Assembly: GCA_002104905.1 (NCBI GenBank)
Contig: MCFE01000371.1
Coordinates: 1-64,000, forward strand
DNA length: 64,000 bases
Direction: 5' to 3'
From: Basidiobolus meristosporus CBS 931.73
Taxonomy: Eukaryota > Fungi > Basidiobolomycota
This document shows, one piece after another, positions 3,785-26,126 of the stretch. Every line of letters begins with the position of its first letter. Position 1 is the stretch's first letter. The notes beneath the pieces are model-generated. The model searched no databases. It had not been told where the DNA came from and worked only from the letters and a program-made list of their open reading frames with translations. The translations under genes were made by a program, and so were the position numbers.

Positions 3785-4025
3785 TTTTGTCCCCCAGCTG
3801 TTTAAATGTTTTCTACTATGACTCATTAGTGACCAATGTTTGGATGAAGGCAAAGTGGAGGATACCACTTTTTCTCGTTGCAGCAGTCCCCGTGGGTTGT
3901 AGGCTTGGCAGGAATAATCAGTATGTGAAGCCAGTGAGGGAATTGGATTCAGCCAGCTGGGTCAATAACACACAGGCTGTAATTGCTGTTTTTCAATGGA
4001 ATGCAGAAATCCTATCGATATAAAT

Positions 4026-4097
4026 GGTTTCGTGGTGTAATGGTTAGCACCCAGGACTTTGAATCCTGTAATCCGAGTTCGATTCTCGGCGAGACCT
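4026..4097 (+). tRNA. tRNA-Gln(TTG), unit 2
   Basis: Copy of 538-609 (+3488). Confidence 0.95.
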
Positions 4098-4307
4098 TTT
4101 TCTTAATTCAAAATATTCGTTTTGTTACGCTCACTAAAATGCTGCAATAAAGCTTTTCTACTCCGCAGGATGGCCTCGGGTGGACGGCTGGGTTGCTTAT
4201 TGCCGGGGCTGCCACATAGTTGTTGAATGGCCCGCACATGGAATCCATTATTGCATCAGTCGAAATGGTCTCCACCTAAGTATGAGAGTCGCCTTGGTAA
4301 TAAGAGT

Positions 4308-4379
4308 GGCTCTATGGTCTAGTAGTATGATTCTCGCTTTGGGTGCGAGAGGTCGCGGGTTCAATTCCCGCTGGAGCCC
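4308..4379 (+). tRNA. tRNA-Pro(TGG), unit 2
   Basis: Copy of 820-891 (+3488), same A18. Confidence 0.92.
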
Positions 4380-4567
4380 TTTCCTTTTGCATTTTTCATA
4401 TATCAAAACACCCCCACTATTCCTCTTACATGAGCAATTTCCAGGCTATCATTTATTTTAGCCGTGCTACCTTTCGTATATGGGTCTCGTAAGATCCTTC
4501 AAAATCACCGGCGTTTTCAGCATCAATATCAGACTAGACTATAGATTTTATGAAGAGTACAGTAAAG

Positions 4568-4639
4568 TCCTCATTGGTCCAGTGGTTAGGATTTCTCGCT
4601 TTCACCGAGACGGCCGGGGTTCGATTCCCCGATGGGGAA
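4568..4639 (+). tRNA. tRNA-Glu(TTC), unit 2
   Basis: Copy of 1080-1151 (+3488). Confidence 0.95.
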
Positions 4640-4939
4640 TTATTTTTCTAGTACAATGGCGCTTTTTCCTGCAGATAGGTATCATCAGACGGAATACTTG
4701 AATGGATTTCTGAGGAGCAACGATGAGGCATTCGGGGGCTTTGATTTATTTATTCTCGTACCCACTAATATTCTATTATTGGCATTCCTTTCGGGTGTCC
4801 TTATTTTGCTAATTAAGATCTACAAAGGCATCGATGGAATGGAAAGCAGCCTTCAATATACTAAGGACAAAACCTGTGCCTGTGCACACTCTGTGCTGTA
4901 AAGATGATGATATCATTTCCGGACTTGAGACATATACAA

Positions 4940-5013
4940 GTCTTCGTGGTGTAGTTGGTTATCACGTCTGTCTAACACACAGACGGTCCTCGGTTCGAAT
5001 CCGAGCGAAGACA
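4940..5013 (+). tRNA. tRNA-Val(AAC), unit 2
   Basis: Copy of 1452-1525 (+3488). Confidence 0.95.
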
Positions 5014-5182
5014 TGTTTCTTTTAGTTTTTTGAGTACGCTTCGCATTTTGATCAACCATTAGAGTAATAGTTAAAAGTAGTATGCTTGAACTAAATACAC
5101 GGCTGGTGGCCAGAATTTTATTGCGCTCAGTAACAAAAGGTTGAAAGCATAATGCAAATCAACTGGAGCGGAGCAAAAGAAG

Positions 5183-5254
5183 GGGCTCAACCGGGAATTG
5201 AACCCGGGACCTCTCCCACCCTAAGGGAGAATTATACCACTAAACCATTGAGCC
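5183..5254 (-). tRNA. tRNA-Pro(AGG), unit 2
   Basis: Copy of 1695-1766 (+3488). Confidence 0.95.
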
Positions 5255-5468
5255 GCTTACACATAGTCTCGTAATTAATGTTTATTTCAGAATATATTTT
5301 CTTAACACACTCACTATCTTGATGGTTTATTTGTGCGAAAATAGTATGTTTCCGTAGAAACATCAAGGTATATGTCAGAGCAATACATAGACCCATTTGA
5401 CAGCAAAAGTGTATCTTCGCTTATCCATAGTATTGAAAATGGTATCTCTTGGATCCCACAATTGATAA

Positions 5469-5539
5469 GCCATTGTAGTATAGTGGCAGTACATCGCGTT
5501 GTGGCCGCGTCGACCTCGGTTCGATTCCGAGCAATGGCA
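5469..5539 (+). tRNA. tRNA-His(GTG), unit 2
   Basis: Copy of 1981-2051 (+3488). Confidence 0.94.
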
Positions 5540-5859
5540 TTTCATTTTTCTTGCTACCCCAGGATTGATTCCTTCTTTTTCAAGGCAAAATGTACTTAAT
5601 ATGTTTAACTCGCGTTGATTTTTTTTTTGCAGACTCACCTCTGTTGAACCCTTCCCTAATATCAGCCAAGCCGGGTCTGGTATACCAATTACTGACACAG
5701 CTTGCTCATTTAAGACTACCCATAGATTTGCATGTTTGCATATATCTATAGTCAGCTCCACCGGTACACTCTAAAAATATGAAAGGTAGTTTCATACGAA
5801 ATTTGGCATTCCCCTAACACAAATCATATTACTACCAGTTACCTAATCACTGGCAACAT

Positions 5860-5942
5860 GGTAACATGGCCGAGTTGGTCTAAGGCGCCGCACTCAAGTT
5901 GCGGTCTCGTAAGAGGCGTGAGTTCGAATCTCACTGTTACCA
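5860..5942 (+). tRNA. tRNA-Leu(CAA), unit 2
   Basis: Copy of 2372-2454 (+3488). Confidence 0.95.
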
Positions 5943-6398
5943 AATTCTTTTGGTCTTTTTGCTGATCGTTGAGCCTAGGCAATCGAATCGCCAACTATTA
6001 AATAGTGCGTTGTACTTTTCTTTTTGCTCCTTGATGATCTTCCGTACCAATAGGGAGTAGTTTGGGATTACATACCTGGTGATTGAGCACATCCGCAACA
6101 AAACGTTCGGATTAGGGTTAGTTGAAGAACTTTAAATAAATCCCACCGCCTTGGAGTGATCTTTCAAGAATGGGCTCACCAAAAATTTCAGCAAACCGGG
6201 CATGGTAATTAGTGGTGGGGAGTGCGGTCCCTCGACCATAGCGGATGGGTTTGAACCACAATCGTAGCTGGTCGGAATCTGCAGCAATACCACCACGCCA
6301 GCACTGCTGTGGCCAATTGTTAATACTCGTGTACCACTTATGAGTAGAGTAACCAGCAAGCCGGATAAGATAGCAACTTTAGAGAGTAGTGTATATCA

Positions 6399-6480
6399 GA
6401 CAATATGGCCGAGTGGTTAAGGCGTATGACTAGAAATCATATGGGCTCTGCCCGCGCAGGTTCAAATCCTGCTGTTGTCG
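6399..6480 (+). tRNA. tRNA-Ser(AGA), unit 2
   Basis: Copy of 2911-2992 (+3488). Confidence 0.95.
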
Positions 6481-6782
6481 AAAATTTTTTATTTTTTGTC
6501 CTCGTATTTTCCAACATGACTGATCTGTAAAAGCAATTCATTGGGGAGAAATACCAATTCTTGTTTTCTTTCACTCCCTAATCTCCTATGAAGGAAGGTG
6601 CTCTCTGATCAAAACGGTGCCTTCCATCGCCCTCTGCCCACCTAATCCCTCATTTCTGATAGCTCTGGAGAATCCCACGGAATCAGACGCATACTTGTGC
6701 TTGTTGGGAACAATGTCGGGCAAGTTGTTGCATCGCTACTAGTTAAGAACAAGATTGTATCCAATTATGGGATCATCAGTGA

Positions 6783-6855
6783 GCCCGAATAGCTCAGTCG
6801 GTAGAGCATGAGACTTTTAATCTTAGGGTCGGGGGTTCGAGCCCCCCTTTGGGCG
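6783..6855 (+). tRNA. tRNA-Lys(TTT), unit 2
   Basis: Copy of 3295-3367 (+3488). Confidence 0.95.
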
Positions 6856-7201
6856 CACCTATACTTTTTATTTAGCTGCTAAAGGTGCTTTTAAGTGGTG
6901 CACTTTACCAAGCTATGGGGTTTCCGGAGAGACAGCCCCGGTTCGCCTTAACCCCCTGGTATGGGCTTTGCTACCTTATACTTGTTTGCTCATCCCAGAG
7001 AAGCGCCCTTTAGTGCTTTTTGGAGAGTTTTATGAGATGGCTGTACTTGGGTAAGGTAAATAGAACACCTCAAATGGGAATTCGACCAAAGTTTTGTATG
7101 CTTTGGTATTTTACCCCTGAGTATTTGTGTAATGTTCTATCTGTTCTCACATTAGGCAATTTTGTTATCGAATATTGAAGGAATCGTATGTACATGTACT
7201 T

Positions 7202-7272
7202 GCGTTAATAGTATAGCGGTAGAATAACTGCCTTCCAAGCAGTTGGCCTGGGTTCGACTCCCAGTTAACGCA
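7202..7272 (+). tRNA. tRNA-Gly(TCC), unit 3
   Basis: Copy of 226-296 (+6976). Confidence 0.94.
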
Positions 7273-7513
7273 TTTTGTCCCCCAGCTGTTTAAATGTTTT
7301 CTACTATGACTCATTAGTGACCAATGTTTGGATGAAGGCAAAGTGGAGGATACCACTTTTTCTCGTTGCAGCAGTCCCCGTGGGTTGTAGGCTTGGCAGG
7401 AATAATCAGTATGTGAAGCCAGTGAGGGAATTGGATTCAGCCAGCTGGGTCAATAACACACAGGCTGTAATTGCTGTTTTTCAATGGAATGCAGAAATCC
7501 TATCGATATAAAT

Positions 7514-7585
7514 GGTTTCGTGGTGTAATGGTTAGCACCCAGGACTTTGAATCCTGTAATCCGAGTTCGATTCTCGGCGAGACCT
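7514..7585 (+). tRNA. tRNA-Gln(TTG), unit 3
   Basis: Copy of 538-609 (+6976). Confidence 0.94.
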
Positions 7586-7795
7586 TTTTCTTAATTCAAA
7601 ATATTCGTTTTGTTACGCTCACTAAAATGCTGCAATAAAGCTTTTCTACTCCGCAGGATGGCCTCGGGTGGACGGCTGGGTTGCTTATTGCCGGGGCTGC
7701 CACATAGTTGTTGAATGGCCCGCACATGGAATCCATTATTGCATCAGTCGAAATGGTCTCCACCTAAGTATGAGAGTCGCCTTGGTAATAAGAGT

Positions 7796-7867
7796 GGCTC
7801 TATGGTCTAGTAGTATGATTCTCGCTTTGGGTGCGAGAGGTCGCGGGTTCAATTCCCGCTGGAGCCC
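7796..7867 (+). tRNA. tRNA-Pro(TGG), unit 3
   Basis: Copy of 820-891 (+6976), same A18. Confidence 0.91.
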
Positions 7868-8055
7868 TTTCCTTTTGCATTTTTCATATATCAAAACACC
7901 CCCACTATTCCTCTTACATGAGCAATTTCCAGGCTATCATTTATTTTAGCCGTGCTACCTTTCGTATATGGGTCTCGTAAGATCCTTCAAAATCACCGGC
8001 GTTTTCAGCATCAATATCAGACTAGACTATAGATTTTATGAAGAGTACAGTAAAG

Positions 8056-8127
8056 TCCTCATTGGTCCAGTGGTTAGGATTTCTCGCTTTCACCGAGACG
8101 GCCGGGGTTCGATTCCCCGATGGGGAA
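8056..8127 (+). tRNA. tRNA-Glu(TTC), unit 3
   Basis: Copy of 1080-1151 (+6976). Confidence 0.94.
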
Positions 8128-8427
8128 TTATTTTTCTAGTACAATGGCGCTTTTTCCTGCAGATAGGTATCATCAGACGGAATACTTGAATGGATTTCTG
8201 AGGAGCAACGATGAGGCATTCGGGGGCTTTGATTTATTTATTCTCGTACCCACTAATATTCTATTATTGGCATTCCTTTCGGGTGTCCTTATTTTGCTAA
8301 TTAAGATCTACAAAGGCATCGATGGAATGGAAAGCAGCCTTCAATATACTAAGGACAAAACCTGTGCCTGTGCACACTCTGTGCTGTAAAGATGATGATA
8401 TCATTTCCGGACTTGAGACATATACAA

Positions 8428-8501
8428 GTCTTCGTGGTGTAGTTGGTTATCACGTCTGTCTAACACACAGACGGTCCTCGGTTCGAATCCGAGCGAAGAC
8501 A
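8428..8501 (+). tRNA. tRNA-Val(AAC), unit 3
   Basis: Copy of 1452-1525 (+6976). Confidence 0.94.
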
Positions 8502-8670
8502 TGTTTCTTTTAGTTTTTTGAGTACGCTTCGCATTTTGATCAACCATTAGAGTAATAGTTAAAAGTAGTATGCTTGAACTAAATACACGGCTGGTGGCCA
8601 GAATTTTATTGCGCTCAGTAACAAAAGGTTGAAAGCATAATGCAAATCAACTGGAGCGGAGCAAAAGAAG

Positions 8671-8742
8671 GGGCTCAACCGGGAATTGAACCCGGGACCT
8701 CTCCCACCCTAAGGGAGAATTATACCACTAAACCATTGAGCC
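8671..8742 (-). tRNA. tRNA-Pro(AGG), unit 3
   Basis: Copy of 1695-1766 (+6976). Confidence 0.94.
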
Positions 8743-8956
8743 GCTTACACATAGTCTCGTAATTAATGTTTATTTCAGAATATATTTTCTTAACACACTC
8801 ACTATCTTGATGGTTTATTTGTGCGAAAATAGTATGTTTCCGTAGAAACATCAAGGTATATGTCAGAGCAATACATAGACCCATTTGACAGCAAAAGTGT
8901 ATCTTCGCTTATCCATAGTATTGAAAATGGTATCTCTTGGATCCCACAATTGATAA

Positions 8957-9027
8957 GCCATTGTAGTATAGTGGCAGTACATCGCGTTGTGGCCGCGTCG
9001 ACCTCGGTTCGATTCCGAGCAATGGCA
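8957..9027 (+). tRNA. tRNA-His(GTG), unit 3
   Basis: Copy of 1981-2051 (+6976). Confidence 0.93.
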
Positions 9028-9347
9028 TTTCATTTTTCTTGCTACCCCAGGATTGATTCCTTCTTTTTCAAGGCAAAATGTACTTAATATGTTTAACTCG
9101 CGTTGATTTTTTTTTTGCAGACTCACCTCTGTTGAACCCTTCCCTAATATCAGCCAAGCCGGGTCTGGTATACCAATTACTGACACAGCTTGCTCATTTA
9201 AGACTACCCATAGATTTGCATGTTTGCATATATCTATAGTCAGCTCCACCGGTACACTCTAAAAATATGAAAGGTAGTTTCATACGAAATTTGGCATTCC
9301 CCTAACACAAATCATATTACTACCAGTTACCTAATCACTGGCAACAT

Positions 9348-9430
9348 GGTAACATGGCCGAGTTGGTCTAAGGCGCCGCACTCAAGTTGCGGTCTCGTAA
9401 GAGGCGTGAGTTCGAATCTCACTGTTACCA
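9348..9430 (+). tRNA. tRNA-Leu(CAA), unit 3
   Basis: Copy of 2372-2454 (+6976). Confidence 0.94.
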
Positions 9431-9894
9431 AATTCTTTTGGTCTTTTTGCTGATCGTTGAGCCTAGGCAATCGAATCGCCAACTATTAAATAGTGCGTTG
9501 TACTTTTCTTTTTGCTCCTTGATGATCTTCCGTACCAATAGGGAGTAGTTTGGGATTACATACCTGGTGATTGAGCACATCCGCAACAAAACGTTCGGAT
9601 TAGGGTTAGTTGAAGAACTTTAAATAAATCCCACCGCCTTGGAGTGATCTTTCAAGAATGGGCTCACCAAAAATTTCAGCAAACCGGGCATGGTAATTAG
9701 TGGTGGGGAGTGCGGTCCCTCGACCATAGCGGATGGGTTTGAACCACAATCGTAGCTGGTCGGAATCTGCAGCAATACCACCACGCCAGCACTGCTGTGG
9801 CCAATATGTTACTAGTAGTAACTCGTGTACCACTTATGAGTAGAGTAACCAGCAAGCCGGATAAGATAGCAACTTTAGAGAGTAGTGTATATCA

Positions 9895-9955
9895 GACAAT
9901 ATGCCGAGTGGTTAAGCGTATGACTAGAAATCATATGGCTCTGCCGCAGTCAATG
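9895..9955 (+). pseudogene. Corrupted, truncated tRNA-Ser(AGA) at the inversion junction (likely a sequence-quality artefact)
   Basis: Matches 2911 onward but with shortened homopolymers (ATATGCC, TTAAGCG, ATGGCTCTGCCGC) and no T-arm or 3' acceptor strand. Confidence 0.75.
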
Positions 9956-10249
9956 CTGTAGAACAGATAGAACATTACACAAATACTCAGGGTAAATACC
10001 AAAGCATACAAAACTTTGGTCGAATTCCCATTTGAGGTGTTCTATTTACCTTACCCAAGTACAGCCATCTCATAAAACTCTCCAAAAAGCACTAAAGGGC
10101 GCTTCTCTGGGATGAGCAAACAAGTATAAGGTAGCAAAGCCCATACCAGGGGGTTAAGGCGAACCGGGGCTGTCTCTCCGGAAACCCCATAGCTTGGTAA
10201 AGTGCACCACTTAAAAGCACCTTTAGCAGCTAAATAAAAAGTATAGGTG

Positions 10250-10322
10250 CGCCCAAAGGGGGGCTCGAACCCCCGACCCTAAGATTAAAAGTCTCATGCT
10301 CTACCGACTGAGCTATTCGGGC
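10250..10322 (-). tRNA. tRNA-Lys(TTT), inverted copy
   Basis: Reverse complement of 3295-3367. Confidence 0.93.
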
Positions 10323-10624
10323 TCACTGATGATCCCATAATTGGATACAATCTTGTTCTTAACTAGTAGCGATGCAACAACTTGCCCGACATTGTTCCCA
10401 ACAAGCACAAGTATGCGTCTGATTCCGTGGGATTCTCCAGAGCTATCAGAAATGAGGGATTAGGTGGGCAGAGGGCGATGGAAGGCACCGTTTTGATCAG
10501 AGAGCACCTTCCTTCATAGGAGATTAGGGAGTGAAAGAAAACAAGAATTGGTATTTCTCCCCAATGAATTGCTTTTACAGATCAGTCATGTTGGAAAATA
10601 CGAGGACAAAAAATAAAAAATTTT

Positions 10625-10706
10625 CGACAACAGCAGGATTTGAACCTGCGCGGGCAGAGCCCATATGATTTCTAGTCATACGCCTTAACCACTCGGCCAT
10701 ATTGTC
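10625..10706 (-). tRNA. tRNA-Ser(AGA), inverted copy
   Basis: Reverse complement of 2911-2992. Confidence 0.93.
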
Positions 10707-11162
10707 TGATATACACTACTCTCTAAAGTTGCTATCTTATCCGGCTTGCTGGTTACTCTACTCATAAGTGGTACACGAGTATTAACAATTGGCCACAGCA
10801 GTGCTGGCGTGGTGGTATTGCTGCAGATTCCGACCAGCTACGATTGTGGTTCAAACCCATCCGCTATGGTCGAGGGACCGCACTCCCCACCACTAATTAC
10901 CATGCCCGGTTTGCTGAAATTTTTGGTGAGCCCATTCTTGAAAGATCACTCCAAGGCGGTGGGATTTATTTAAAGTTCTTCAACTAACCCTAATCCGAAC
11001 GTTTTGTTGCGGATGTGCTCAATCACCAGGTATGTAATCCCAAACTACTCCCTATTGGTACGGAAGATCATCAAGGAGCAAAAAGAAAAGTACAACGCAC
11101 TATTTAATAGTTGGCGATTCGATTGCCTAGGCTCAACGATCAGCAAAAAGACCAAAAGAATT

Positions 11163-11245
11163 TGGTAACAGTGAGATTCGAACTCACGCCTCTTACGAGA
11201 CCGCAACTTGAGTGCGGCGCCTTAGACCAACTCGGCCATGTTACC
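11163..11245 (-). tRNA. tRNA-Leu(CAA), inverted copy
   Basis: Reverse complement of 2372-2454. Confidence 0.93.
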
Positions 11246-11565
11246 ATGTTGCCAGTGATTAGGTAACTGGTAGTAATATGATTTGTGTTAGGGGAATGCC
11301 AAATTTCGTATGAAACTACCTTTCATATTTTTAGAGTGTACCGGTGGAGCTGACTATAGATATATGCAAACATGCAAATCTATGGGTAGTCTTAAATGAG
11401 CAAGCTGTGTCAGTAATTGGTATACCAGACCCGGCTTGGCTGATATTAGGGAAGGGTTCAACAGAGGTGAGTCTGCAAAAAAAAAATCAACGCGAGTTAA
11501 ACATATTAAGTACATTTTGCCTTGAAAAAGAAGGAATCAATCCTGGGGTAGCAAGAAAAATGAAA

Positions 11566-11636
11566 TGCCATTGCTCGGAATCGAACCGAGGTCGACGCGG
11601 CCACAACGCGATGTACTGCCACTATACTACAATGGC
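11566..11636 (-). tRNA. tRNA-His(GTG), inverted copy
   Basis: Reverse complement of 1981-2051. Confidence 0.92.
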
Positions 11637-11850
11637 TTATCAATTGTGGGATCCAAGAGATACCATTTTCAATACTATGGATAAGCGAAGATACACTTTT
11701 GCTGTCAAATGGGTCTATGTATTGCTCTGACATATACCTTGATGTTTCTACGGAAACATACTATTTTCGCACAAATAAACCATCAAGATAGTGAGTGTGT
11801 TAAGAAAATATATTCTGAAATAAACATTAATTACGAGACTATGTGTAAGC

Positions 11851-11922
11851 GGCTCAATGGTTTAGTGGTATAATTCTCCCTTAGGGTGGGAGAGGTCCCG
11901 GGTTCAATTCCCGGTTGAGCCC
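11851..11922 (+). tRNA. tRNA-Pro(AGG), inverted copy
   Basis: Reverse complement of 1695-1766. Confidence 0.93.
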
Positions 11923-12091
11923 CTTCTTTTGCTCCGCTCCAGTTGATTTGCATTATGCTTTCAACCTTTTGTTACTGAGCGCAATAAAATTCTGGCCACC
12001 AGCCGTGTATTTAGTTCAAGCATACTACTTTTAACTATTACTCTAATGGTTGATCAAAATGCGAAGCGTACTCAAAAAACTAAAAGAAACA

Positions 12092-12165
12092 TGTCTTCGC
12101 TCGGATTCGAACCGAGGACCGTCTGTGTGTTAGACAGACGTGATAACCAACTACACCACGAAGAC
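12092..12165 (-). tRNA. tRNA-Val(AAC), inverted copy
   Basis: Reverse complement of 1452-1525. Confidence 0.93.
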
Positions 12166-12465
12166 TTGTATATGTCTCAAGTCCGGAAATGATATCATCA
12201 TCTTTACAGCACAGAGTGTGCACAGGCACAGGTTTTGTCCTTAGTATATTGAAGGCTGCTTTCCATTCCATCGATGCCTTTGTAGATCTTAATTAGCAAA
12301 ATAAGGACACCCGAAAGGAATGCCAATAATAGAATATTAGTGGGTACGAGAATAAATAAATCAAAGCCCCCGAATGCCTCATCGTTGCTCCTCAGAAATC
12401 CATTCAAGTATTCCGTCTGATGATACCTATCTGCAGGAAAAAGCGCCATTGTACTAGAAAAATAA

Positions 12466-12537
12466 TTCCCCATCGGGGAATCGAACCCCGGCCGTCTCGG
12501 TGAAAGCGAGAAATCCTAACCACTGGACCAATGAGGA
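12466..12537 (-). tRNA. tRNA-Glu(TTC), inverted copy, with a Gypsy LTR 11 bp upstream
   Basis: Reverse complement of 1080-1151; 11-nt spacer 12538-12548, then LTR. Confidence 0.94.
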
Positions 12538-12548
12538 CTTTACTGTAC

Positions 12549-12858
12549 TGTTATGAATCGAGGGCAAGCGGAGGAGGACCGGAGGATGTCCAATACGAAT
12601 CAGAGAGGTTATCTGAATAGTTGATGAACCGGTAAAAGGTTGATGCTTTATTGATAGTGTTCAAAGGAGTTTATATAGAGATAGCCTCGGAGGGAGAGCT
12701 TCCGATAACGTAGGGCAAGCTTCCAAAAGGAGGGTTCAAGATGTATTAAATAACGTGTGTATCACTGAGTGCGATTGATCGTCTGTGTGGAATTCCAGGT
12801 GTTCGATCAGTAGTGTTCAAGTGATCGGTAGTGACTAGTTAGGATTTAAATCATAACA
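12549..12858 (-). repeat. 3' LTR of Gypsy copy A (310 bp)
   Basis: TGTTATGA...TCATAACA 8-bp inverted termini; reverse complement of 20912-21221. Confidence 0.96.
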
Positions 12859-12869
12859 TACTCCCACAC

Positions 12870-15800
12870 TTAAAGAGGTTCTTCTCCTGAAGAGTCCTGT
12901 CTATCGGACTTGTAATACCAGTATTTGGTTGGTGGTGTCATTGGGTTTTTTAGCTGTGCTTCCTTTAGTCGGTCTCTATGCACTAGGTCCTCCTTTACTT
13001 TACCTGACATGTCTGCGAGTTGAAATGTATTGAAGGGCATTTCTCTTGTGATAATAAAGGGTCCAACCCAATGTGGTTCTAGTTTTAGCCTACTTTCATT
13101 TCGGACTAATACAAGTTTTCCCAAAGTTAAGGGTTTTGTTACCACTGTTTTGTTGTACTGTTCTTTCATCTTCTCTGCTTGTCGTTTTAAATTCTTGATG
13201 GCATCATGTCTTGCATGTCCTAATTCTTCCAGTTCCCTTGTTCTGAATTCTGCCAAGTCTTTTTGGTTCTTTAAGTCCCAGATGTATGGTGGTAAGGTAT
13301 CACCTGGGATTCTTGGATGTGTACCATACACTAGGTAGAAGGGGGACTTTTGTGTTGCTGAATGGACTCTAATACGACAGGCAAAGAGTGCTTGATGTAC
13401 AAATTCATCCCACTTATGTTTGGCTCCTTTGACATAAGTAGTCAGCATCTTCCCAAAGAGTCCATTGAACCTCTCTGTGACCCCATTTGTTCTAGGGTGG
13501 TATGCTGATGTCTTCAAATGTCTAACCCCCATTATCTGAAGGTATTCTTTCAAGGTTTGTTCCAAAAAGTTTGCTCCTCTGTCAGACAGAATTTCACCTG
13601 GGCATCCAAACTGCATAAAGATTTCCAGGTAAAGGAATTTTGCAACATTTTTTGCAGTAGCTGCTGGCATGGCTTTTGCTATACACCACTTAGTGGTATG
13701 GTCAATTGCAGTTATGATCCACTTGTTCCCTCTTGAAGTTTCAGGCAATATTCCAATGAAGTCAATTCCCCATCTGTAGAATGCTGGAACTGGAGTCAGT
13801 GGTTCTAATGGGGCATGTTCCTTGTTGTATGGTCTAGCCAGCTGGCACTCAGGGCAGGTCTTGAGGGTCTCAGCTATAAATTGTTTGAGTTTAGGCCACC
13901 AGGCTCTCCTTTTAGTTATTTCATAAGTTCCTTGGATGCCCAGATGTCCAAAGGCTTTATGATTCTTGATTATCATGTCACCTCTGTATACAAATGGAAT
14001 ATATGGTACAGGCCCTATTTCTTCCATGTGTCTGTAAAGTACCTCGTCTTCACCATATGAGAAATTCTCTGCTTCTTTCTTAATCTTGACCCTTACTTCC
14101 TGTGATAAATCTTCTGGCATTGTCTGACTTGCCAAGTACTCTGGCATGTATTCTGGCCAGTCCAACTCATGATCTACCATTGATATATGTTGCCTTGAGA
14201 GTGCATCAGCAACTGTATTCTTTGGCCCAGGGAGGTAGTGGATTTTAAAATCAAATTGTTGTAGTTCTTCAATCCATCTAGTTATTCTTCTGGATAATAG
14301 CTTCTGGGTGTGAATGTATCTTAGGGATGCATGATCTGTATATACCACAAAGTGTTTGCCCTCCAAGTAGCATCTCCACACTCTCAGACAATGTAGTATG
14401 GCATAGAGTTCTTTTTCATGGACTGGGTAGTTTTGTTCAGTTACTGATAGCTTTTTGGACTCATAAGCAACCGGGTGTTCTTTTTGAGTCAGTACCCCTC
14501 CAACAGCTAGATCTGAAGCATCAGTGTATACACAGAAAGGTTCTGAGAAATCAGGCAACTGAAGCACAGGGGTTTGGCATAGCTTTTCTTTCAGAGTTAG
14601 GAAAGCTGTCTCACAGTTTGGGGTCCATATATAGTCTTTCTCTTTTTTGGTCAAGTCTGTAAGGGGGGCTGCAATAGTTGCAAAGTCCCTGATGAATCTT
14701 CTGTAATATGATGCAAGTCCCAGGAAGGATCTCATTTCAGTGAGTGACTTTGGGGCTTCCCATTTCTGGATAGCATCTATCTTGGCTGGATCCATGTGTA
14801 GTCCTTTATCTGAGATTATGTGACCAAGGTATTCAACTGATCTGGTGAGGAATTCACACTTAGGAAGTTGTGCATATAGCTTGTGCTTTTTTAGTATAGC
14901 CAGTACTGTCTTCAAGTGCTTCATGTGGTCATCCATGCTGGTACTATAGATCAGAATGTCATCTAAGTAGACCAGGACAAATTTCTCTAAATATGGTTCC
15001 AGGATGCTATTCATGAGTGTCTGAAATGTTGCTGGGGCATTAGTCAGGCCAAAGCTCATCACAACAAACTCATAATGACCATATCTTGTGTTGAATGCTG
15101 TCTTAGAGGTGTCTTCAGGCTTAATTCTGATTTGGTGATATCCAGATGCCAGGTCTATTTTAGAGAATATCTTTGCCTTCCCCAGTTGGTCAAAGAGGGC
15201 ATCAATTCTTGGTAATGGGTAGGAATTTCTGACAGTGATTGCATTTAGGGCCCTGTAGTCCACACAGAACCGTAGCTTCCCATCCTTCTTTGGAGCAAAG
15301 AGTACTGGAGCTCCCCATGGTGATTTACTGGGTTTTATCCAGCCTTTAGCCAGGTAGTCCTTCAATGTTTCCTTCAAAGTCTCCATTTCCTTTGGGGAGA
15401 ACTTATATGGGGCTCTGTTTCTTGGTTTATCATCTGTTACTTCTATGGCATGGTCAATCTCTCTGCTTGGGGGTAGTGCAGGGATTTCCTTGGGAAAAAC
15501 CTCTTGAAACTCTGCTAACAAGGTCTTGAGCCTGTCATTTGTCACTTCTGTGGTCTCTTGGATTTTGGCAAAGGCTATCATGTGCAACAGTTTGGGATTC
15601 TGTCTGATAGAGTGGGCAAACTGTTTCTTTGATATGGTGTGTTCTGGTGCATTGCCTTTGTCCAGGGTTGGTTTGGGTGACAGATGATATTTTGCATCAT
15701 CCTTGTTGATTACAACTTCCTGAGTCTGCCAGTTTATGTCAGGATTGTGCTTTCTTAGCCAAGTTTGTCCCACATTGATTTCAAAGTTGGCTTGGGGTAT

Positions 15801-16874
15801 GATAATTGGGGAAATGGTGTCTTGGAAGTCCCTGATTTGTAAAGTCAAGGGTTCAGTCCTGCTGTTCACTATAATTGATTCCTTGGTGGCACAGAGGATG
15901 TGAATTGGGGGGCAAGGGATTGTTTGTAGCTTCATCTGATCAGCTACATCTTTTGAAATGTAGACATCAGTTGCTCCACTGTCAATGAGTACAGAGACAC
16001 ATTGGTTGTTGTTGAGAATCCCTGGGAGTTTCAGCATCTTTGGGGTAGTATATAAGCTCTGAGTCCTCTGATACTCCTTAACAAGGCTGATTGTGTGCTC
16101 CTCCTCCTTAGTGGAGAGTTGGAATACTCTTTGTAATGGCCTCTTTGGGCATTCATTGACTTTATGACCCTGTTCCTTGCAGTAAAAGCATAGTCCAAGC
16201 TTGAAGCATTCCTCTTTAGAAGGTCTTGGTGTGCTCTGCATAACATCTAGGTCCATAGGCTCCAGTGTGTGGGGGTAGTGTGCACCTTGTTCAGTGATTG
16301 GTTGACTACCAATAGGTATGTGGTTATTGGCTTTGAGGCCTGTAGTAGTTCTTGAGTGACCAATTCTGTGGTTGACAGCCCTTCTGAAGTGTATGGCATC
16401 ATATCTTTCTGCCAGTTCCATAGCCTCTACTAGGGTTTTGGGGTCTTTGTATTCAATTTCCCATCTAGTGTTGGATTTCAGGCCTCTTAGGTATTGCTCA
16501 AGTAGTTCAGTATCAGGCATGTTTTGAATTTCCATACTAAGCAAGTTAAACTGCTCATTGTACTCTTGAACAGACTTGGCTTGAAAGAGTTTGGACAGTT
16601 TTTCTCTTGCCATTCTATCAGCATTGATAGGTGTAAACCTCTTTCTCAATGCTTTAACAAAGTCAGCCCAGGAGGCTATGGGTGGAAAGATGCCCCTATT
16701 CATTCCTTGAATGTGAAGTTTCCACCACATGGTTGCTTCCTTTCTGAAAAGTGAACAGGCATAATGTACTTTGACTTCTTCAGAGTCATCTGAGAAGTAT
16801 AGGTACTGCTCTACTTCAAATATCCAAGTCTCTAGAGTGGCAGTGTGTCTTTTGCCTTCAACCAGAAGAATCAA
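12870..16874 (-). CDS. Single-frame Gag-Pol polyprotein (N-terminus missing)
   Basis: PMDLD, CCHC knuckle [14 protein letters not shown], protease [19 protein letters not shown], RNase H YTDAS, integrase H-H-C-C, WGIDFIG / ILSDRG / [10 protein letters not shown] motif; no chromodomain; TTG start is at the junction and not real. Confidence 0.96.
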
Positions 16875-16939
16875 ACCTCATCCACCTTGAATCCTGGACT
16901 TCTACAACAAATCTGAAACTTCAGAAGAAAAGACACACT

Positions 16940-19900
16940 TCTAGAGACTATATTTGAAGTAGAGCAGTACTATACTTCTCAGATGACTCTGAAGAAGTCA
17001 AAGTACATTATGCCTGTTCACTTTTCAGAAAGGAAGCAACCATGTGGTGGAAACTTCACATTCAAGGAATGAATAGGGGCATCTTTCCACCCATAGCCTC
17101 CTGGGCTGACTTTGTTAAAGCATTGAGAAAGAGGTTTACACCTATCAATGCTGATAGAATGGCAAGAGAAAAACTGTCCAAACTCTTTCAAGCCAAGTCT
17201 GTTCAAGAGTACAATGAGCAGTTTAACTTGCTTAGTATGGAAATTCAAAACATGCCTGATACTGAACTACTTGAGCAATACCTAAGAGGCCTGAAATCCA
17301 ACACTAGATGGGAAATTGAATACAAAGACCCCAAAACCCTAGTAGAGGCTATGGAACTGGCAGAAAGATATGATGCCATACACTTCAGAAGGGCTGTCAA
17401 CCACAGAATTGGTCACTCAAGAACTACTACAGGCCTCAAAGCCAATAACCACATACCTATTGGTAGTCAACCAATCACTGAACAAGGTGCACACTACCCC
17501 CACACACTGGAGCCTATGGACCTAGATGTTATGCAGAGCACACCAAGACCTTCTAAAGAGGAATGCTTCAAGCTTGGACTATGCTTTTACTGCAAGGAAC
17601 AGGGTCATAAAGTCAATGAATGCCCAAAGAGGCCATTACAAAGAGTATTCCAACTCTCCACTAAGGAGGAGGAGCACACAATCAGCCTTGTTAAGGAGTA
17701 TCAGAGGACTCAGAGCTTATATACTACCCCAAAGATGCTGAAACTCCCAGGGATTCTCAACAACAACCAATGTGTCTCTGTACTCATTGACAGTGGAGCA
17801 ACTGATGTCTACATTTCAAAAGATGTAGCTGATCAGATGAAGCTACAAACAATCCCTTGCCCCCCAATTCACATCCTCTGTGCCACCAAGGAATCAATTA
17901 TAGTGAACAGCAGGACTGAACCCTTGACTTTACAAATCAGGGACTTCCAAGACACCATTTCCCCAATTATCATACCCCAAGCCAACTTTGAAATCAATGT
18001 GGGACAAACTTGGCTAAGAAAGCACAATCCTGACATAAACTGGCAGACTCAGGAAGTTGTAATCAACAAGGATGATGCAAAATATCATCTGTCACCCAAA
18101 CCAACCCTGGACAAAGGCAATGCACCAGAACACACCATATCAAAGAAACAGTTTGCCCACTCTATCAGACAGAATCCCAAACTGTTGCACATGATAGCCT
18201 TTGCCAAAATCCAAGAGACCACAGAAGTGACAAATGACAGGCTCAAGACCTTGTTAGCAGAGTTTCAAGAGGTTTTTCCCAAGGAAATCCCTGCACTACC
18301 CCAAGCAGAGAGATTGACCATGCCATAGAAGTAACAGATGATAAACCAAGAAACAGAGCCCCATATAAGTTCTCCCCAAAGGAAATGGAGACTTTGAAGG
18401 AAACATTGAAGGACTACCTGGCTAAAGGCTGGATAAAACCCAGTAAATCACCATGGGGAGCTCCAGTACTCTTTGCTCCAAAGAAGGATGGGAAGCTACG
18501 GTTCTGTGTGGACTACAGGGCCCTAAATGCAATCACTGTCAGAAATTCCTACCCATTACCAAGAATTGATGCCCTCTTTGACCAACTGGGGAAGGCAAAG
18601 ATATTCTCTAAAATAGACCTGGCATCTGGATATCACCAAATCAGAATTAAGCCTGAAGACACCTCTAAGACAGCATTCAACACAAGATATGGTCATTATG
18701 AGTTTGTTGTGATGAGCTTTGGCCTGACTAATGCCCCAGCAACATTTCAGACACTCATGAATAGCATCCTGGAACCATATTTAGAGAAATTTGTCCTGGT
18801 CTACTTAGATGACATTCTGATCTATAGTACCAGCATGGATGACCACATGAAGCACTTGAAGACAGTACTGGCTATACTAAAAAAGCACAAGCTATATGCA
18901 CAACTTCCTAAGTGTGAATTCCTCACCAGATCAGTTGAATACCTTGGTCACATAATCTCAGATAAAGGACTACACATGGATCCAGCCAAGATAGATGCTA
19001 TCCAGAAATGGGAAGCCCAAAGTCACTCACTGAAATGAGATCCTTCCTGGGACTTGCATCATATTACAGAAGATTCATCAGGGACTTTGCAACTATTGCA
19101 GCCCCCCTTACAGACTTGACCAAAAAAGAGAAAGACTATATATGGACCCCAAACTGTGAGACAGCTTTCCTAACTCTGAAAGAAAAGCTATGCCAAACCC
19201 CTGTGCTTCAGTTGCCTGATTTCTCAGAACCTTTCTGTGTATACACTGATGCTTCAGATCTAGCTGTTGGAGGGGTACTGACTCAAAAAGAACACCCGGT
19301 TGCTTATGAGTCCAAAAAGCTATCAGTAACTGAACAAAACTACCCAGTCCATGAAAAAGAACTCTATGCCATACTACATTGTCTGAGAGTGTGGAGATGC
19401 TACTTGGAGGGCAAACACTTTGTGGTATATACAGATCATGCATCCCTAAGATACATTCACACCCAGAAGCTATTATCCAGAAGAATAACTAGATGGATTG
19501 AAGAACTACAACAATTTGATTTTAAAATCCACTACCTCCCTGGGCCAAAGAATACAGTTGCTGATGCACTCTCAAGGCAACATATATCAATGGTAGATCA
19601 TGAGTTGGACTGGCCAGAATACATGCCAGAGTACTTGGCAAGTCAGACAATGCCAGAAGATTTATCACAGGAAGTAAGGGTCAAGATTAAGAAAGAAGCA
19701 GAGAATTTCTCATATGGTGAAGACGAGGTACTTTACAGACACATGGAAGAAATAGGGCCTGTACCATATATTCCATTTGTATACAGAGGTGACATGATAA
19801 TCAAGAATCATAAAGCCTTTGGACATCTGGGCATCCAAGGAACTTATGAAATAACTAAAAGGAGAGCCTGGTGGCCTAAACTCAAACAATTTATAGCTGA

Positions 19901-20900
19901 GACCCTCAAGACCTGCCCTGAGTGCCAGCTGGCTAGACCATACAACAAGGAACATGCCCCATTAGAACCACTGACTCCAGTTCCAGCATTCTACAGATGG
20001 GGAATTGACTTCATTGGAATATTGCCTGAAACTTCAAGAGGGAACAAGTGGATCATAACTGCAATTGACCATACCACTAAGTGGTGTATAGCAAAAGCCA
20101 TGCCAGCAGCTACTGCAAAAAATGTTGCAAAATTCCTTTACCTGGAAATCTTTATGCAGTTTGGATGCCCAGGTGAAATTCTGTCCGACAGAGGAGCAAA
20201 CTTTTTGGAACAAACCTTGAAAGAATACCTTCAGATAATGGGGGTTAGACATTTGAAGACATCAGCATACCACCCTAGAACAAATGGGGTCACAGAGAGG
20301 TTCAATGGACTCTTTGGGAAGATGCTGACTACTTATGTCAAAGGAGCCAAACATAAGTGGGATGAATTTGTACATCAAGCACTCTTTGCCTGTCGTATTA
20401 GAGTCCATTCAGCAACACAAAAGTCCCCCTTCTACCTAGTGTATGGTACACATCCAAGAATCCCAGGTGATACCTTACCACCATACATCTGGGACTTAAA
20501 GAACCAAAAAGACTTGGCAGAATTCAGAACAAGGGAACTGGAAGAATTAGGACATGCAAGACATGATGCCATCAAGAATTTAAAACGACAAGCAGAGAAG
20601 ATGAAAGAACAGTACAACAAAACAGTGGTAACAAAACCCTTAACTTTGGGAAAACTTGTATTAGTCCGAAATGAAAGTAGGCTAAAACTAGAACCACATT
20701 GGGTTGGACCCTTTATTATCACAAGAGAAATGCCCTTCAATACATTTCAACTCGCAGACATGTCAGGTAAAGTAAAGGAGGACCTAGTGCATAGAGACCG
20801 ACTAAAGGAAGCACAGCTAAAAAACCCAATGACACCACCAACCAAATACTGGTATTACAAGTCCGATAGACAGGACTCTTCAGGAGAAGAACCTCTTTAA
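16940..20900 (+). pseudogene. Gag-Pol of copy B split by two single-base deletions (ORFs 17042-18328, 18385-19038, 19008-20900)
   Basis: The three ORF pieces match the copy A protein; both breaks are at C homopolymers one base shorter than in copy A, so probably sequencing errors. Confidence 0.85.
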
Positions 20901-20911
20901 GTGTGGGAGTA

Positions 20912-21221
20912 TGTTATGATTTAAATCCTAACTAGTCACTACCGATCACTTGAACACTACTGATCGAACACCTGGAATTCCACACAGACGATCAATCGCA
21001 CTCAGTGATACACACGTTATTTAATACATCTTGAACCCTCCTTTTGGAAGCTTGCCCTACGTTATCGGAAGCTCTCCCTCCGAGGCTATCTCTATATAAA
21101 CTCCTTTGAACACTATCAATAAAGCATCAACCTTTTACCGGTTCATCAACTATTCAGATAACCTCTCTGATTCGTATTGGACATCCTCCGGTCCTCCTCC
21201 GCTTGCCCTCGATTCATAACA
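20912..21221 (+). repeat. 3' LTR of Gypsy copy B (310 bp)
   Basis: Preceded by PPT-like AAGTGTGGGAGTA (20899-20911); TGTTATGA...TCATAACA; TATATAAA 21093-21100; AATAAA 21118-21123. Confidence 0.96.
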
Positions 21222-21227
21222 CTCTCG

Positions 21228-21345
21228 AGCATCGGCCATACATACCAGAAAATACCGGATCCCGTCCGATCTCCGAAGTCAAACTGGTAATGGCCTAGTC
21301 AGTACTACGGTGGGGGACCACGTGGGAATACTAGGTGCTGATGTT
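21228..21345 (+). rRNA. rrn5: 5S rRNA
   Basis: AGCATCGGCCATAC...CCCGTCCGATC...AGTACTACGGTGGGGGACCACGTGGGAATACTAGGTGCTGATGT; helix I closes; TTTT terminator; collinear with known fungal 5S. Confidence 0.96.
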
Positions 21346-21539
21346 TTCTTCCGAATTGCTCCACTACACAATACTCTTTTGCTTCTGTTATGTGTGCGTG
21401 TGTCTGTTCTTCCTTTGCTACTGCTGTCTTTGGTATAAAAGAGTTTGCTTTCCAGATACAATGCTGCTCTCTATTCCCTAGTCATTATTGCTGAAGGGCA
21501 ATTTTAGATAGTATATATAAGAAAGGGTTGTCGTATAAT

Positions 21540-22127: not shown

Positions 22128-22212
22128 CCGAACATAGCTCAGTTGGTAGAGCGGAAGACTGTAGTGTTATATAGCAATCTTTAGGTCCCTGGTTCAAATC
22201 CGGGTGTTCGGA
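22128..22212 (+). tRNA. tRNA-Tyr(GTA) with a 12-nt intron (22165-22176)
   Basis: CCGAACA...TGTTCGGA; GAAGA-CTGTAG-[TGTTATATAGCA]-A-TCTTT; canonical 37/38 intron position. Confidence 0.94.
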
Positions 22213-22576: not shown

Positions 22577-22887
22577 TTCAACTGACAAACGTTGGTTTCT
22601 CAAAATACTTGTATCAGTGTTCATCTTGGTTGATAGAAGCATTTGCATAAAACTAGCTTAGCAAGGATTCTCTGGATGGTGCACCTGCCTCCCAAAGTCA
22701 GCCATATCAGTATGTTCTATGCCGGGTGGATTCCCTAACCCGACGGTTTCCATAATTCTTTGAAGCATCACGGAAATCATCTTTTAAGCGTTTGATAACC
22801 ACTGTAGAATGGCAAACTCCGACCATATAGGAAACCAACACTTGACAAAAACGACATATTCCATTAAAACTTTGTACACTCAATAAG

Positions 22888-22960
22888 GCCCGGCTAGCTC
22901 AATCGGTAGAGCGTGAGACTCTTAATCTCAAGGTTGTGGGTTCGACCCCCACGTTGGGTG
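22888..22960 (+). tRNA. tRNA-Lys(CTT)
   Basis: GCCCGGC...GTTGGGTG; TGAGA-CTCTTAA-TCTCA. Confidence 0.96.
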
Positions 22961-23102
22961 ATGTATATTTTTTATTCTTTGTTTTTCACTTTCCTGGAAT
23001 TGAGCAATAATTTTTGTGTTTTGAACGGTTGTCTGTATATGATATTTAAGCCGGATAGTGATATGGAAGAATGAAACAATGAATCCCAATAGAGTAATTA
23101 TT

Positions 23103-23174
23103 GGACGTATAGCTCAGTGGTAGAGCAATTGACTGCAGATCAATAGGTCGGTGGTTCAAATCCGCCTGCGTCCT
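23103..23174 (+). tRNA. tRNA-Cys(GCA)
   Basis: GGACGTA...TGCGTCCT; ATTGA-CTGCAGA-TCAAT. Confidence 0.95.
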
Positions 23175-23294
23175 CATCTTTTTTGCTAATTGAAGCGTTC
23201 ATTAAAATACAATTTCGCCTAGCCACCAATTACATCTACTCACATAAATATAGCATTCAAAAGATTGATGAAATTCATTTAGAATAATCCAAAA

Positions 23295-23367
23295 TGGAGG
23301 ACCTGGGTATCGATCCCAGTGCCTCTCGCATGCTAAGCGAGCGCTCTACCATCTGAGCTAGACCCCC
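23295..23367 (-). tRNA. tRNA-Ala(AGC)
   Basis: Minus GGGGGTC...GTCCTCCA with G3-U70; CTCGC-TTAGCAT-GCGAG; T-loop ATCGATA. Confidence 0.94.
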
Positions 23368-23757
23368 ATATATATACACCTCGGTGGAAAACCACTTATC
23401 TTTTTTAATTCTTCAATAGATGTACTCGCATGGCAAAGAAAATACTGGCTAGCATTGAATTGAGGACCCTGTTAACAATGGTAATGTGTATGTCTCTTAT
23501 TATCAACTTTGTGCGATCAAGGGGGCATTCATTGATGTATGACTGATGGCTATTTTGGAGCATTTTTGTTATCCACACTACAGATGCTTTTGTTTCTTTC
23601 GGTTTGTTAATAGAAATCTCTCTGTGGCTACGCTATTAAGAGCTTCTGCCGTTTTCCCATATATAGCGCAATCTAGAAGTACACTAAATGTGAAAAGTAA
23701 TCAAGCCTAACAGATCAGATTTCCGTATTTTCTAAGACGGTTGTTTGCACTGGTACT

Positions 23758-23829
23758 GGCTCAATGGTTTAGTGGTATAATTCTCCCTTAGGGTGGGAGA
23801 GGTCCTGGGTTCAATTCCCAGTTGAGCCC
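23758..23829 (+). tRNA. tRNA-Pro(AGG) variant
   Basis: Identical to the array Pro(AGG) except T-stem CTGGG/CCCAG in place of CCGGG/CCCGG. Confidence 0.9.
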
Positions 23830-23839
23830 TTCTTTTGTT

Positions 23840-25660
23840 TGTTTTCCTGTCAAAATGGATTGTTAGTAAGAATGGGGTACTCTGAGCTGCAGCAGCAATT
23901 AATGTTGTGGATTCCCCTTGGTAATTCTTGATTGACAAGTAATGTAAAAATGCAATTTTTCCATCACAACAGAGCCCATCCTCCAAAGTTAAGCATCTGT
24001 TGTGGGCACATATCTTGAGTTTTCAGCTGTAACTTTTGTTCCAAGTCTGCCAAAATAATACTACAGTTTGTCCAAGTGTCTATAACAACCAGATATTGCT
24101 TCTTGTTGATACTTATAAGTATTTGTGCTACCTGAATATCCTCTTGTGGTTGTTCCTCAGCCTTTTCTTGTATATTATTCATATGTTGCTCCATGTGGTT
24201 TAACTCTTGCTTCAACATAGGCTACTTTAAAAGACTTCAAATTGGAACAGGGATTTCCTGATTCCTTATTTGGTTTGCAACTTGGGTGACATCCATTAGT
24301 GTTGTTATGCCAGATGGTTTTATTGTTCCCCCTCCAGTTTCTATTATCATGCATTCCATTTTTGGGGATTCATCCTTTGTATCCATTGACTTTTTTCTAA
24401 CATATATATAGAATCTGTCATGTCTTCTACTATGTTGACTTTGGAATGGCTCCTATATTTGCCTTCCTCTTGCAAGGTATTTCCTTCTCTTTGTGTATTT
24501 GCTACTACAGTTGGTACTAACTTGAAATAAGGACAATTCCTCAAGATATGTCTGGGTTCTCCACAACCAAAGCATCTTTGTTCCCTTCTTGGAGGGTTGT
24601 GGTTTGAACTGGGGATAGAACTAGAATTTGTCTTCTGACTGGCTAACAAATTAAGTTCCATTCAATCAAATTTAGCTGCCAGTTTATCCAGTTGACTATC
24701 CCATGATGTTGTTGGTGGAGTTAATAATAGTGCATGTGTTTTCTCATTGATATTCTCCCTTGTAGGGCCTCCTAGACATTGTTCCTCCTCCTCAGCAAAA
24801 GCAATTGCTTCACCCAGAGTTGTGGGTCTACATTTTCTGACCTCCATCTGGATCTCAGAGTGAAGAACATTGAGAAACTTTGATCTTATCTTCCTCCAGT
24901 GAGTATCCCAACCTTGCAAATAATCTTAATACTTATGTGGCAATTTCTGCTACTGATTCATCTTTCTGTCATAAATTCATCAGGTTTGACACCATGCATC
25001 CATTTGTGCCATTGTGACATATTTTTCCTTGAATCTTTGCTTAATGGTTTCCCAATCTGTCAAAAGCCCTTCACTTTCTTCTTACCTAGTAGCTGCTAGT
25101 TCCTTCATGTAAGCACCTGCAATTGTTGGAAGATCTGCTAGATCCCATCAATTTGCCTTTTGACTTACTTCACATTCCTGTAGCCAAGCAATAGGATATT
25201 TGGTCTGATATCCCAAGAAATTGCTAATTGTGACCAGTCTTTGTTCCCATTGTAGCATGGACATCTTCTGTTCTTTTTGTAAGAGATAGATTCCTTTTGT
25301 TTAATACTACCCCCTGCTGTGAGCACTAATTCTGTTATGTACTTAAAGAGTAATGTCCTTTAGAGAGTACAAAAAGGGATAATATGTATGTTATCTTGTA
25401 GATTTGACAGGGTAGTGTAAGAATATCTCTTTAAAAGGTTAGGGTGTTGACCTTGTAGAAATATATTTAAGCTAGTTTTTGCTCCCACTATGCTTTTCTG
25501 CCTATAACCAAAAACTCCCTTTTTACTTAGTTGCTTGTTTGATATTTATACCTTACTGTGAGTCTGGTGATTTGTCTTTGATTTGCTTTTCCCTGACTAC
25601 TAAGTTGTCTTTGTATGTGTTGATGTCACTTAACATCAAGTGACTCTTTACTCTGTAACA
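23840..25660 (-). mobile_element. Degenerate Ty3/Gypsy-like relic (older family): 5' LTR, gag, protease fragment
   Basis: Broken frames with KCRPTTLGEAI, CCHC CFGCGEPRHILRNC and protease-like YLVVIDT; LTR at 25333-25660; almost no CpG. Confidence 0.8.
25333..25660 (-). repeat. 5' LTR of the older Gypsy relic (328 bp)
   Basis: TGTTA...TAACA termini; homologous to 30127 onward; TATAAAT on minus strand; PBS-like tract on the gag side. Confidence 0.75.
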
Positions 25661-25670
25661 ACTCAATAAG

Positions 25671-25743
25671 GCCTGGCTAGCTCAATTGGTAGAGCATGAG
25701 ACTCTTAATCTTAAGGTTGTGGGTTTGACCCCCACATTGGGTG
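25671..25743 (+). pseudogene. tRNA-Lys(CTT) pseudogene
   Basis: Five CpGs changed to TpG/CpA, including T-loop TTCGA to TTTGA (B-box damage). Confidence 0.9.
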
Positions 25744-26116: not shown

Positions 26117-26126
26117 ATATATATAC

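Follow-up and report, generated by a model that had tools for sequence, protein, structure and literature searches.

The window, here the whole stretch of 64,000 nucleotides analysed, covers positions 1 to 64,000 (forward strand) of contig MCFE01000371.1 from Basidiobolus meristosporus CBS 931.73 (assembly GCA_002104905.1). Our subject is a Ty3/gypsy retrotransposon within it, whose long open reading frame (ORF; 12870-16874, minus strand) is nearly devoid of CpG dinucleotides, while the adjoining long terminal repeat (LTR) holds them at normal density. CpG abundance is given throughout as the ratio of observed to expected counts (o/e). The element lies in a mirror-image arrangement bounded by two genes transcribed by RNA polymerase III (Pol III):

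12466-12537, minus strand: tRNA-Glu(TTC) gene, found with Rfam and ARAGORN, its 5′ end 11 bp from the left LTR end
12549-12858, minus strand: LTR of the left copy (3′ LTR), 310 bp, TGTTATGA...TCATAACA, from direct reading of the sequence
12859-12869, minus strand: purine-rich stretch GTGTGGGAGTA (element strand) in the gap between stop codon and LTR, from direct reading
12870-13389, minus strand: terminal 520 bp of the ORF (integrase C-terminal region), intermediate in CpG (o/e 0.28)
12870-16874, minus strand: Ty3/gypsy ORF encoding Gag, protease (PR), reverse transcriptase (RT), RNase H and integrase (IN), 1334 codons in 4005 bp, 5′-truncated, with its Pfam domains in canonical order
16803-16969, no strand: palindrome centre, in which imperfect pairing continues and the right arm has several small deletions (arm-to-arm alignment)
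16970-21221, plus strand: second copy of the element in mirror orientation, its LTR occupying 20912-21221 (arm-to-arm alignment)
21228-21346, plus strand: 5S rRNA gene (Rfam, 108.6 bits), starting 6 bp past the right LTR end

The polyprotein combines Gag (Ty3_capsid/Retrotrans_gag, residues 6-164), protease (RVP_2, 286-393), RT (RVT_1, 528-687), RNase H (RT_RNaseH, 775-874) and integrase (Integrase_H2C2, 964-1015; rve, 1033-1127) in a single chain, which is the domain order of Ty3/gypsy elements (Metaviridae); Pfam annotation of the ORF revealed no chromodomain. Catalytic residues at invariant or near-invariant columns of a 26-sequence alignment are kept in the protease (D298-S-G), RT (D638-D639) and integrase (H972/H977/C1007/C1010 and D1038/D1098/E1134). 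The LTR contains TATATAA and AATAAA motifs by direct reading, and the GTGTGGGAGTA stretch beside it is likely the polypurine tract. An original prediction, made from the letters of the window alone, had called this an intact Gag-Pol ORF. That description holds in so far as the frame is open and the catalytic residues are present, but it fails at the 5′ end. The first codon is a mechanical TTG that stands 5 residues ahead of the conserved capsid motif with an in-frame stop just upstream, while 16 residues precede this motif in the closest relative and a median of 91 across homologues. A 5′ LTR, a primer binding site (PBS) and an ATG-initiated Gag were found in neither arm, their place being taken by the palindrome centre. 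Each arm thus has a single 3′ LTR, without the second LTR, target-site duplication and PBS of a complete Ty3/gypsy element.

The ORF occupies the left arm of a head-to-head palindrome with arms of about 4.25 kb (12549-16802 versus 16970-21221) and runs into its centre. A single substitution separates 12549-16802 from the mirror arm, along with three single-G deletions in G runs that all lie in the right arm and break the frame of the mirror copy into three ORFs. Inter-arm differences fall at 14752, 15469 and 16802, and five or more further right-arm deletions lie within 60 bp of the centre. The deletion pattern looks like that of a poorly polished long-read consensus around a fold-back. Because nearly all arm differences are right-arm deletions in G runs or near the centre, the mirror layout may stem from faulty assembly and not be biological. 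The sole substitution places an A at 13584 opposite a G at 20186, which reads on the coding strand as TpG in the left arm and CpG in the right. As had been predicted, it is a clean and synonymous change, falling at the third position of Ser1097, and uniform mutation would have hit a CpG with a probability of about 0.011.

Both arms carry the same LTR, which ends 11 bp upstream of the tRNA-Glu gene (12537-12549) and 6 bp upstream of the 5S rRNA gene (21221-21228). The tRNA-Glu(TTC) gene is part of an inverted piece of a tandem array with a 3488-bp unit, and the empty insertion site can be seen in other units of the array at unit position 1065. The sequence context indicates that the element targets Pol III genes in the manner of Ty3.

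CpG counts divide the locus sharply. The whole ORF contains 9 CpGs against 178 expected from base composition (o/e 0.051), with GpC at a normal o/e of 0.86. Six of the nine lie in the 520 bp nearest the 3′ LTR (12870-13389; 21.5 expected), and the other 3485 bp hold three against 156.5 expected (o/e 0.02). These figures agree closely with the predicted count of about nine where well over 100 would be expected, six of them next to the LTR. The LTR (12549-12858) has the 13 CpGs originally counted in it; with 12.0 expected (o/e 1.08), it is CpG-normal rather than CpG-rich, as it had been called. Per 200 bp from the outer LTR end inward, the number of CpGs runs 8, 6, 3, 1, 1, 0, 0, 1, 0 and 1, and GC content is uniform over LTR and ORF (0.41-0.43). 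TpG and CpA together have an o/e of 0.97 in the LTR versus 1.35 in the ORF body. CpG o/e values are 0.76-0.92 for five host ORFs in the window, 1.01 for tRNA genes and 0.64 for the spacers of the tRNA array. The ORF thus displays the depletion associated with methylation, with CpG far below the host level and GpC normal.

This deficit persists when codon usage is controlled for, as the original prediction had proposed to check. Back-translating the protein with host codon usage yields 252±10 CpGs, and permuting the ORF's own synonymous codons yields 83±6 (no fewer than 64 in any of 1000 permutations), compared to the nine observed. Codon boundaries hold 3 C|G where 83.2 are expected, together with 137 T|G against 83.5 (o/e 1.64, a gain of 53) and 137 C|A against 101.9 (o/e 1.34, a gain of 35). 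Codon usage as the cause of the deficit is ruled out by the own-codon permutation together with these boundary counts. The T|G and C|A gains roughly equal the C|G loss, so that TpG and CpA, the products of CpG decay, are in excess by about the amount of CpG that is missing. Of the two decay routes, the synonymous one (NNC|G to NNT|G) has been taken more often. Within codons, the NCG share of codon families is 0-1% in the element and 23-30% in the host, while the NCA share is 35-56% and 10-22%, respectively. No preference for a preceding base is seen in the ORF (observed/expected: ACG 1/41, CCG 2/35, GCG 1/40, TCG 5/62), and TCG is not favoured as a target.

Arginine is encoded almost only by AGA or AGG, in line with what had been noticed from the letters: the element has 64 AGA/AGG (AGR) codons versus 5 CGN, and the host 46 AGR versus 111 CGN, at similar arginine contents (5.2% in the element, 5.5% in host proteins). 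Residues 1167, 1231, 1258 and 1302, all within the last 170 codons, account for four of the five CGN codons. Three CGA codons persist in this stretch, each one transition short of a stop, and the earlier suggestion that the element has become resistant to mutation is accordingly borne out only in part.

CpG loss is also evident in repeats elsewhere in the window:

23739-31330, no strand: CpG-free repeat block, o/e 0.02, GC 36%
25650-26126, plus strand: decayed copy, inside the CpG-free block, of the tRNA-bearing segment at 22869-23377 (pairwise alignment)
55012-64000, no strand: CpG-poor repeat block, o/e 0.07, containing a Ty1/copia element that is broken (about 56512-61907), along with more copies of the ~350-bp LTR of that element

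The edges of the CpG-poor blocks fall near the ends of transposable elements. The tRNA-bearing segment provides a direct before-and-after comparison. All 16 alignable CpGs of 22869-23377 are gone from the copy at 25650-26126, 7 having become TG and 9 CA, against 17 other substitutions in 475 aligned bases (3.6%). The copy that remains in the active tRNA cluster is unmutated, and this one-sided loss argues for an effect of the domain and not for mutation triggered by homology, which would hit both copies. Nor do LTRs escape as a rule, since the older copia family has lost the CpGs of its LTR: seven copies of this LTR are nearly CpG-free, and the remaining sites read CG, TG or CA depending on the copy. 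Sequence context differs between the blocks. TCG is absent from 55012-64000 (0 versus 116 expected), where ACG, CCG and GCG are each still found at 5-10 sites, and in 23739-31330 all four NCG contexts are equally depleted. Classical repeat-induced point mutation (RIP) of the Neurospora type is ruled out both by the one-sided mutation of the duplicate and by the index (CpA+TpG)/(ApC+GpT), whose values of 1.47 for the ORF and 1.40-1.49 for the repeat blocks lie above the RIP range (below about 1.03). Two tRNA-like genes lie inside the CpG-free block, Pro-AGG (23758-23829) and Lys-CTT (25671-25743). The latter arose as a duplicate of 22888-22960 that has since decayed, though Rfam continues to recognize it at 50.9 bits; both may be dead tRNA genes.

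Several features of the protein and of the two arms bear on when the ORF lost its CpGs. At the most conserved arginine columns of the 26-sequence alignment the element keeps Arg in 9 of 12 cases, eight as AGR and one as a surviving CGG. The element departs from conserved columns 30 times, only once in the way that CpG decay would produce (R1059H); about half of the departures are common to the nearest relative, and there is no stop within the 1334 codons. A C-to-T change cannot turn CGN into AGR, so the shift to AGR requires long evolution under selection. The footprint as a whole well supports CpG-to-TpG decay at the level of the lineage, filtered by purifying selection. The arms, in turn, are identical at every former CpG site but one (13584/20186). 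Because they differ by a single substitution, the loss predates the duplication, and since independent decay would have left many TG-versus-CA differences between them, decay in place is unlikely. The CpG-free body would thus have been inherited at insertion rather than gained by the present copy where it stands.

The explanation we consider probable is that CpG-specific C-to-T decay of repeats, probably by way of 5-methylcytosine (5mC), acted over the long term on the coding body of the element's lineage and was filtered by selection. The ORF would then be a young copy of a Ty3/gypsy element that landed just upstream of Pol III genes, in a genome that applies fast CpG-specific C-to-T mutation to repeat DNA. 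The most likely cause of such mutation would be deamination of cytosines methylated by DNMT1/UHRF1 and Dim2-like enzymes. As the element was copied again and again, the coding body of the lineage would have been exposed to this process, with synonymous and tolerated CpGs becoming TpG or CpA, essential arginines moving to AGA/AGG, and selection for a working Gag-Pol purging damaging changes. The body would in this way have come down to the CpG floor of fully decayed neutral repeats, and the present copy would have received it in that state when it inserted. The LTR would have been spared by survivorship: only copies whose LTR was unmethylated, owing to an active promoter and/or to Pol III neighbours, would have left descendants. 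Methylation of the body would not have stopped propagation, and the position beside Pol III genes may add to the protection of the LTR. The original prediction had likewise invoked deamination of methylated cytosine and purifying selection, and had supposed that the LTR promoter is either protected or in need of CpG; the loss of LTR CpGs in the copia family means that any such protection would not extend to LTRs as a class. The decay footprint, the AGR arginines and the kept catalytic residues speak for both decay and selection; methylation as the cause, and the reason for the sparing of the LTR, are what we infer from the sequence.

Three points weigh against this explanation. CpG rises at the 3′ end of the ORF only, the gag end being entirely free of it, and a simple model in which CpGs survive on the shores of a promoter therefore fails to explain both ends. 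The rate of CpG loss in the decayed tRNA-bearing segment, estimated from its 16 sites, is roughly 50 times the per-site background or more, which is high for purely spontaneous deamination. Finally, the proposed inheritance of a CpG-free body throughout the family is deduced from one locus.

The high rate and the completeness of the loss, 16 of 16 sites against 3.6% of other change, would suit an enzymatic, homology-triggered hypermutation of CpG akin to RIP, as proposed for TpCpG in rust and smut fungi, in place of methylation and spontaneous deamination, and so would the complete absence of TCG from 55012-64000 where other NCG contexts keep some sites. We nevertheless give this process only a slim chance. 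The tRNA-bearing segment was mutated solely in its repeat-block copy, which points to the domain and not to homology; all four NCG contexts are equally gone from the ORF and from 23739-31330; and the classical RIP index lies outside the RIP range. Editing of the minus-strand cDNA by an APOBEC-like enzyme was rejected, since loss should then be strongest immediately upstream of the polypurine tract, where CpG survival is highest. The same 3′ gradient, rising toward the flanking tRNA and 5S genes, and the evident decay in place of neighbouring repeats lend some colour to the view that the present copy lost its CpGs after insertion, with its LTR shielded by the Pol III genes and its frame open by luck. 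This is very improbable: independent mutation of the two arms should have left more than one differing site, so that decay in place is largely refuted unless the assembly made the palindrome by copying a single arm, and neither the AGR codons at conserved arginines, unreachable from CGN by C-to-T change, nor the near absence of CpG-decay departures and of stops fits with it.

The contrast between body and LTR could also have been selected for directly. If CpG-free coding bodies were favoured because they escape CpG-directed silencing or mutation by the host, the body would reflect adaptive avoidance rather than a passive equilibrium. The sparing of the LTR speaks for this, because mutation alone should strip a non-coding LTR at least as fast, yet it keeps all its CpGs. 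However, the o/e of 0.02 in the ORF body is the same floor that neutral decayed repeats reach (0.02-0.07), and no extra force is needed to account for it; moreover, the CGA codons one transition from a stop persist. We regard adaptive avoidance as unlikely, although the counts fit passive and adaptive loss alike. A mosaic or foreign origin, with a body that came from a CpG-poor lineage or host, or an LTR and last ~500 bp that were recombined from a CpG-normal element, would accord with the stepped o/e (1.08 in the LTR, 0.28 in the last 520 bp, 0.02 in the rest), with the clustering of four of the five CGN codons in the last 170 codons and with the lack of a protein relative above 34% identity in the word-index search. 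It seems quite unlikely to us, given that unrelated resident repeats in the window are equally depleted, showing the process in place and making a resident origin simpler, and that GC is uniform across the proposed boundaries.

A word-index search with the polyprotein returned no relative above 34% identity, and a scan of metagenomes returned 27 related loci at 26-50% identity, with none above 50%. CpG poverty is not a trait of the clade, because related metagenomic gypsy loci (n = 20) span CpG o/e values of 0-1.07, most of them 0.4-1.05. This spread gives an approximate version of the comparison with elements from non-methylating genomes that the original prediction had named as a refuting test. 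Three distant gypsy loci from one metagenome project (L014, L017 and L021; Ga0157362-64) have CpG o/e values of 0-0.12 at 30-39% GC. CpG-erased gypsy elements thus occur in at least one further eukaryote besides Basidiobolus.

For B. meristosporus, published source data list a DNMT1 (ORX99839), two Dim2-like proteins (ORX98566 and ORX84408), a UHRF1 (ORX90637) and HELLS, and list neither DNMT5 nor DNMT3 (PMC10538959). CpG-biased C-to-T decay of transposable elements has been described in fungi with Dnmt1-class enzymes (PMC4352252, PMC3318451). The Basidiobolus pattern resembles that of these Dnmt1/Masc2-class fungi (Microbotryum, Puccinia, Melampsora and Tuber) in that CpG-directed C-to-T change is restricted to repeats and leaves host genes untouched, and in that a Dnmt1-class gene is listed for the host. 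It differs from them in its early-diverging host (Zoopagomycota), in the depletion of all NCG contexts in this ORF rather than of TpCpG alone, and in affecting an apparently functional coding body where dead copies are affected in those fungi. With Neurospora RIP it shares C-to-T mutation aimed at repeats; unlike RIP, which prefers CpA, strikes both duplicates and destroys frames, it targets CpG, spares one duplicate and leaves the frame conserved.

In the CpG-methylating genomes of mammals, LINE-1 elements and young endogenous retroviruses combine a CpG-poor body with a promoter (5′ untranslated region or LTR) that is dense in CpG (see also PMC12582260). The likeness lies in a control region that keeps its CpGs next to a coding body that loses them and, by analogy, in the logic that only copies with an unmethylated promoter would leave progeny. 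The depletion is far deeper here (o/e 0.02-0.05 versus about 0.2 for vertebrate genomes), host and enzymes are different, and methylation is only the probable cause. Ty3 of Saccharomyces cerevisiae is similar in its Gag-PR-RT-RNaseH-IN order, in the Ty3_capsid and Ty3 peptidase matches without a chromodomain, and in the ending of the LTR a few base pairs (here 11 and 6) upstream of tRNA and 5S genes. The Basidiobolus element is set apart from it by a protein identity of only ~30% to any known relative and by the lack of a visible second LTR and target-site duplication, and since yeast has no DNA methylation, the CpG pattern is without counterpart in Ty3.

Reviews describe cytosine methylation as almost absent in zygomycete-grade fungi. 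The window provides sequence-level evidence of strong CpG-specific mutation, probably based on 5mC, acting on the repeats of such a fungus, and a clean natural contrast at one locus between a CpG-free body, a CpG-normal LTR and Pol III neighbours. What is new is the instance in an early-diverging fungus and not the principle, the kind of process being known from rusts, smuts, truffles and mammals. A wider extrapolation, which we put forward as doubtful, is that this is the end state of an arms race across Basidiobolus, in which functional transposable elements would generally have near-zero CpG in their coding bodies and normal CpG in their control regions, a fast CpG mutator having selected for ‘methylation-proof’ genes. 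If this is true, most of the mutator's own targets would by now be gone, a possible reason for the apparent scarcity of 5mC in early-diverging fungi.

The tandem array to the left of the element fills positions 1-12552. Its 3488-bp unit carries ten different tRNA genes and is present in three copies, 100% identical wherever they were compared. Next come a junction of 188 bp and an incomplete unit in inverted orientation (9994-12552). This inversion is not symmetric and is thus not a simple fold-back. To the right of the element, ARAGORN gives the tRNA gene at 22128-22212 a four-base anticodon loop reading (gtag), while its Rfam score of 59.9 bits is that of a normal tRNA; it is probably an intron-bearing tRNA, or one of the Tyr/Leu type with a long arm, misread under bacterial settings. 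The window also contains an ORF for an aspartyl aminopeptidase, whose best named matches come from B. ranarum, at 86-87% identity, and from a paralogue in B. meristosporus, at 80%.

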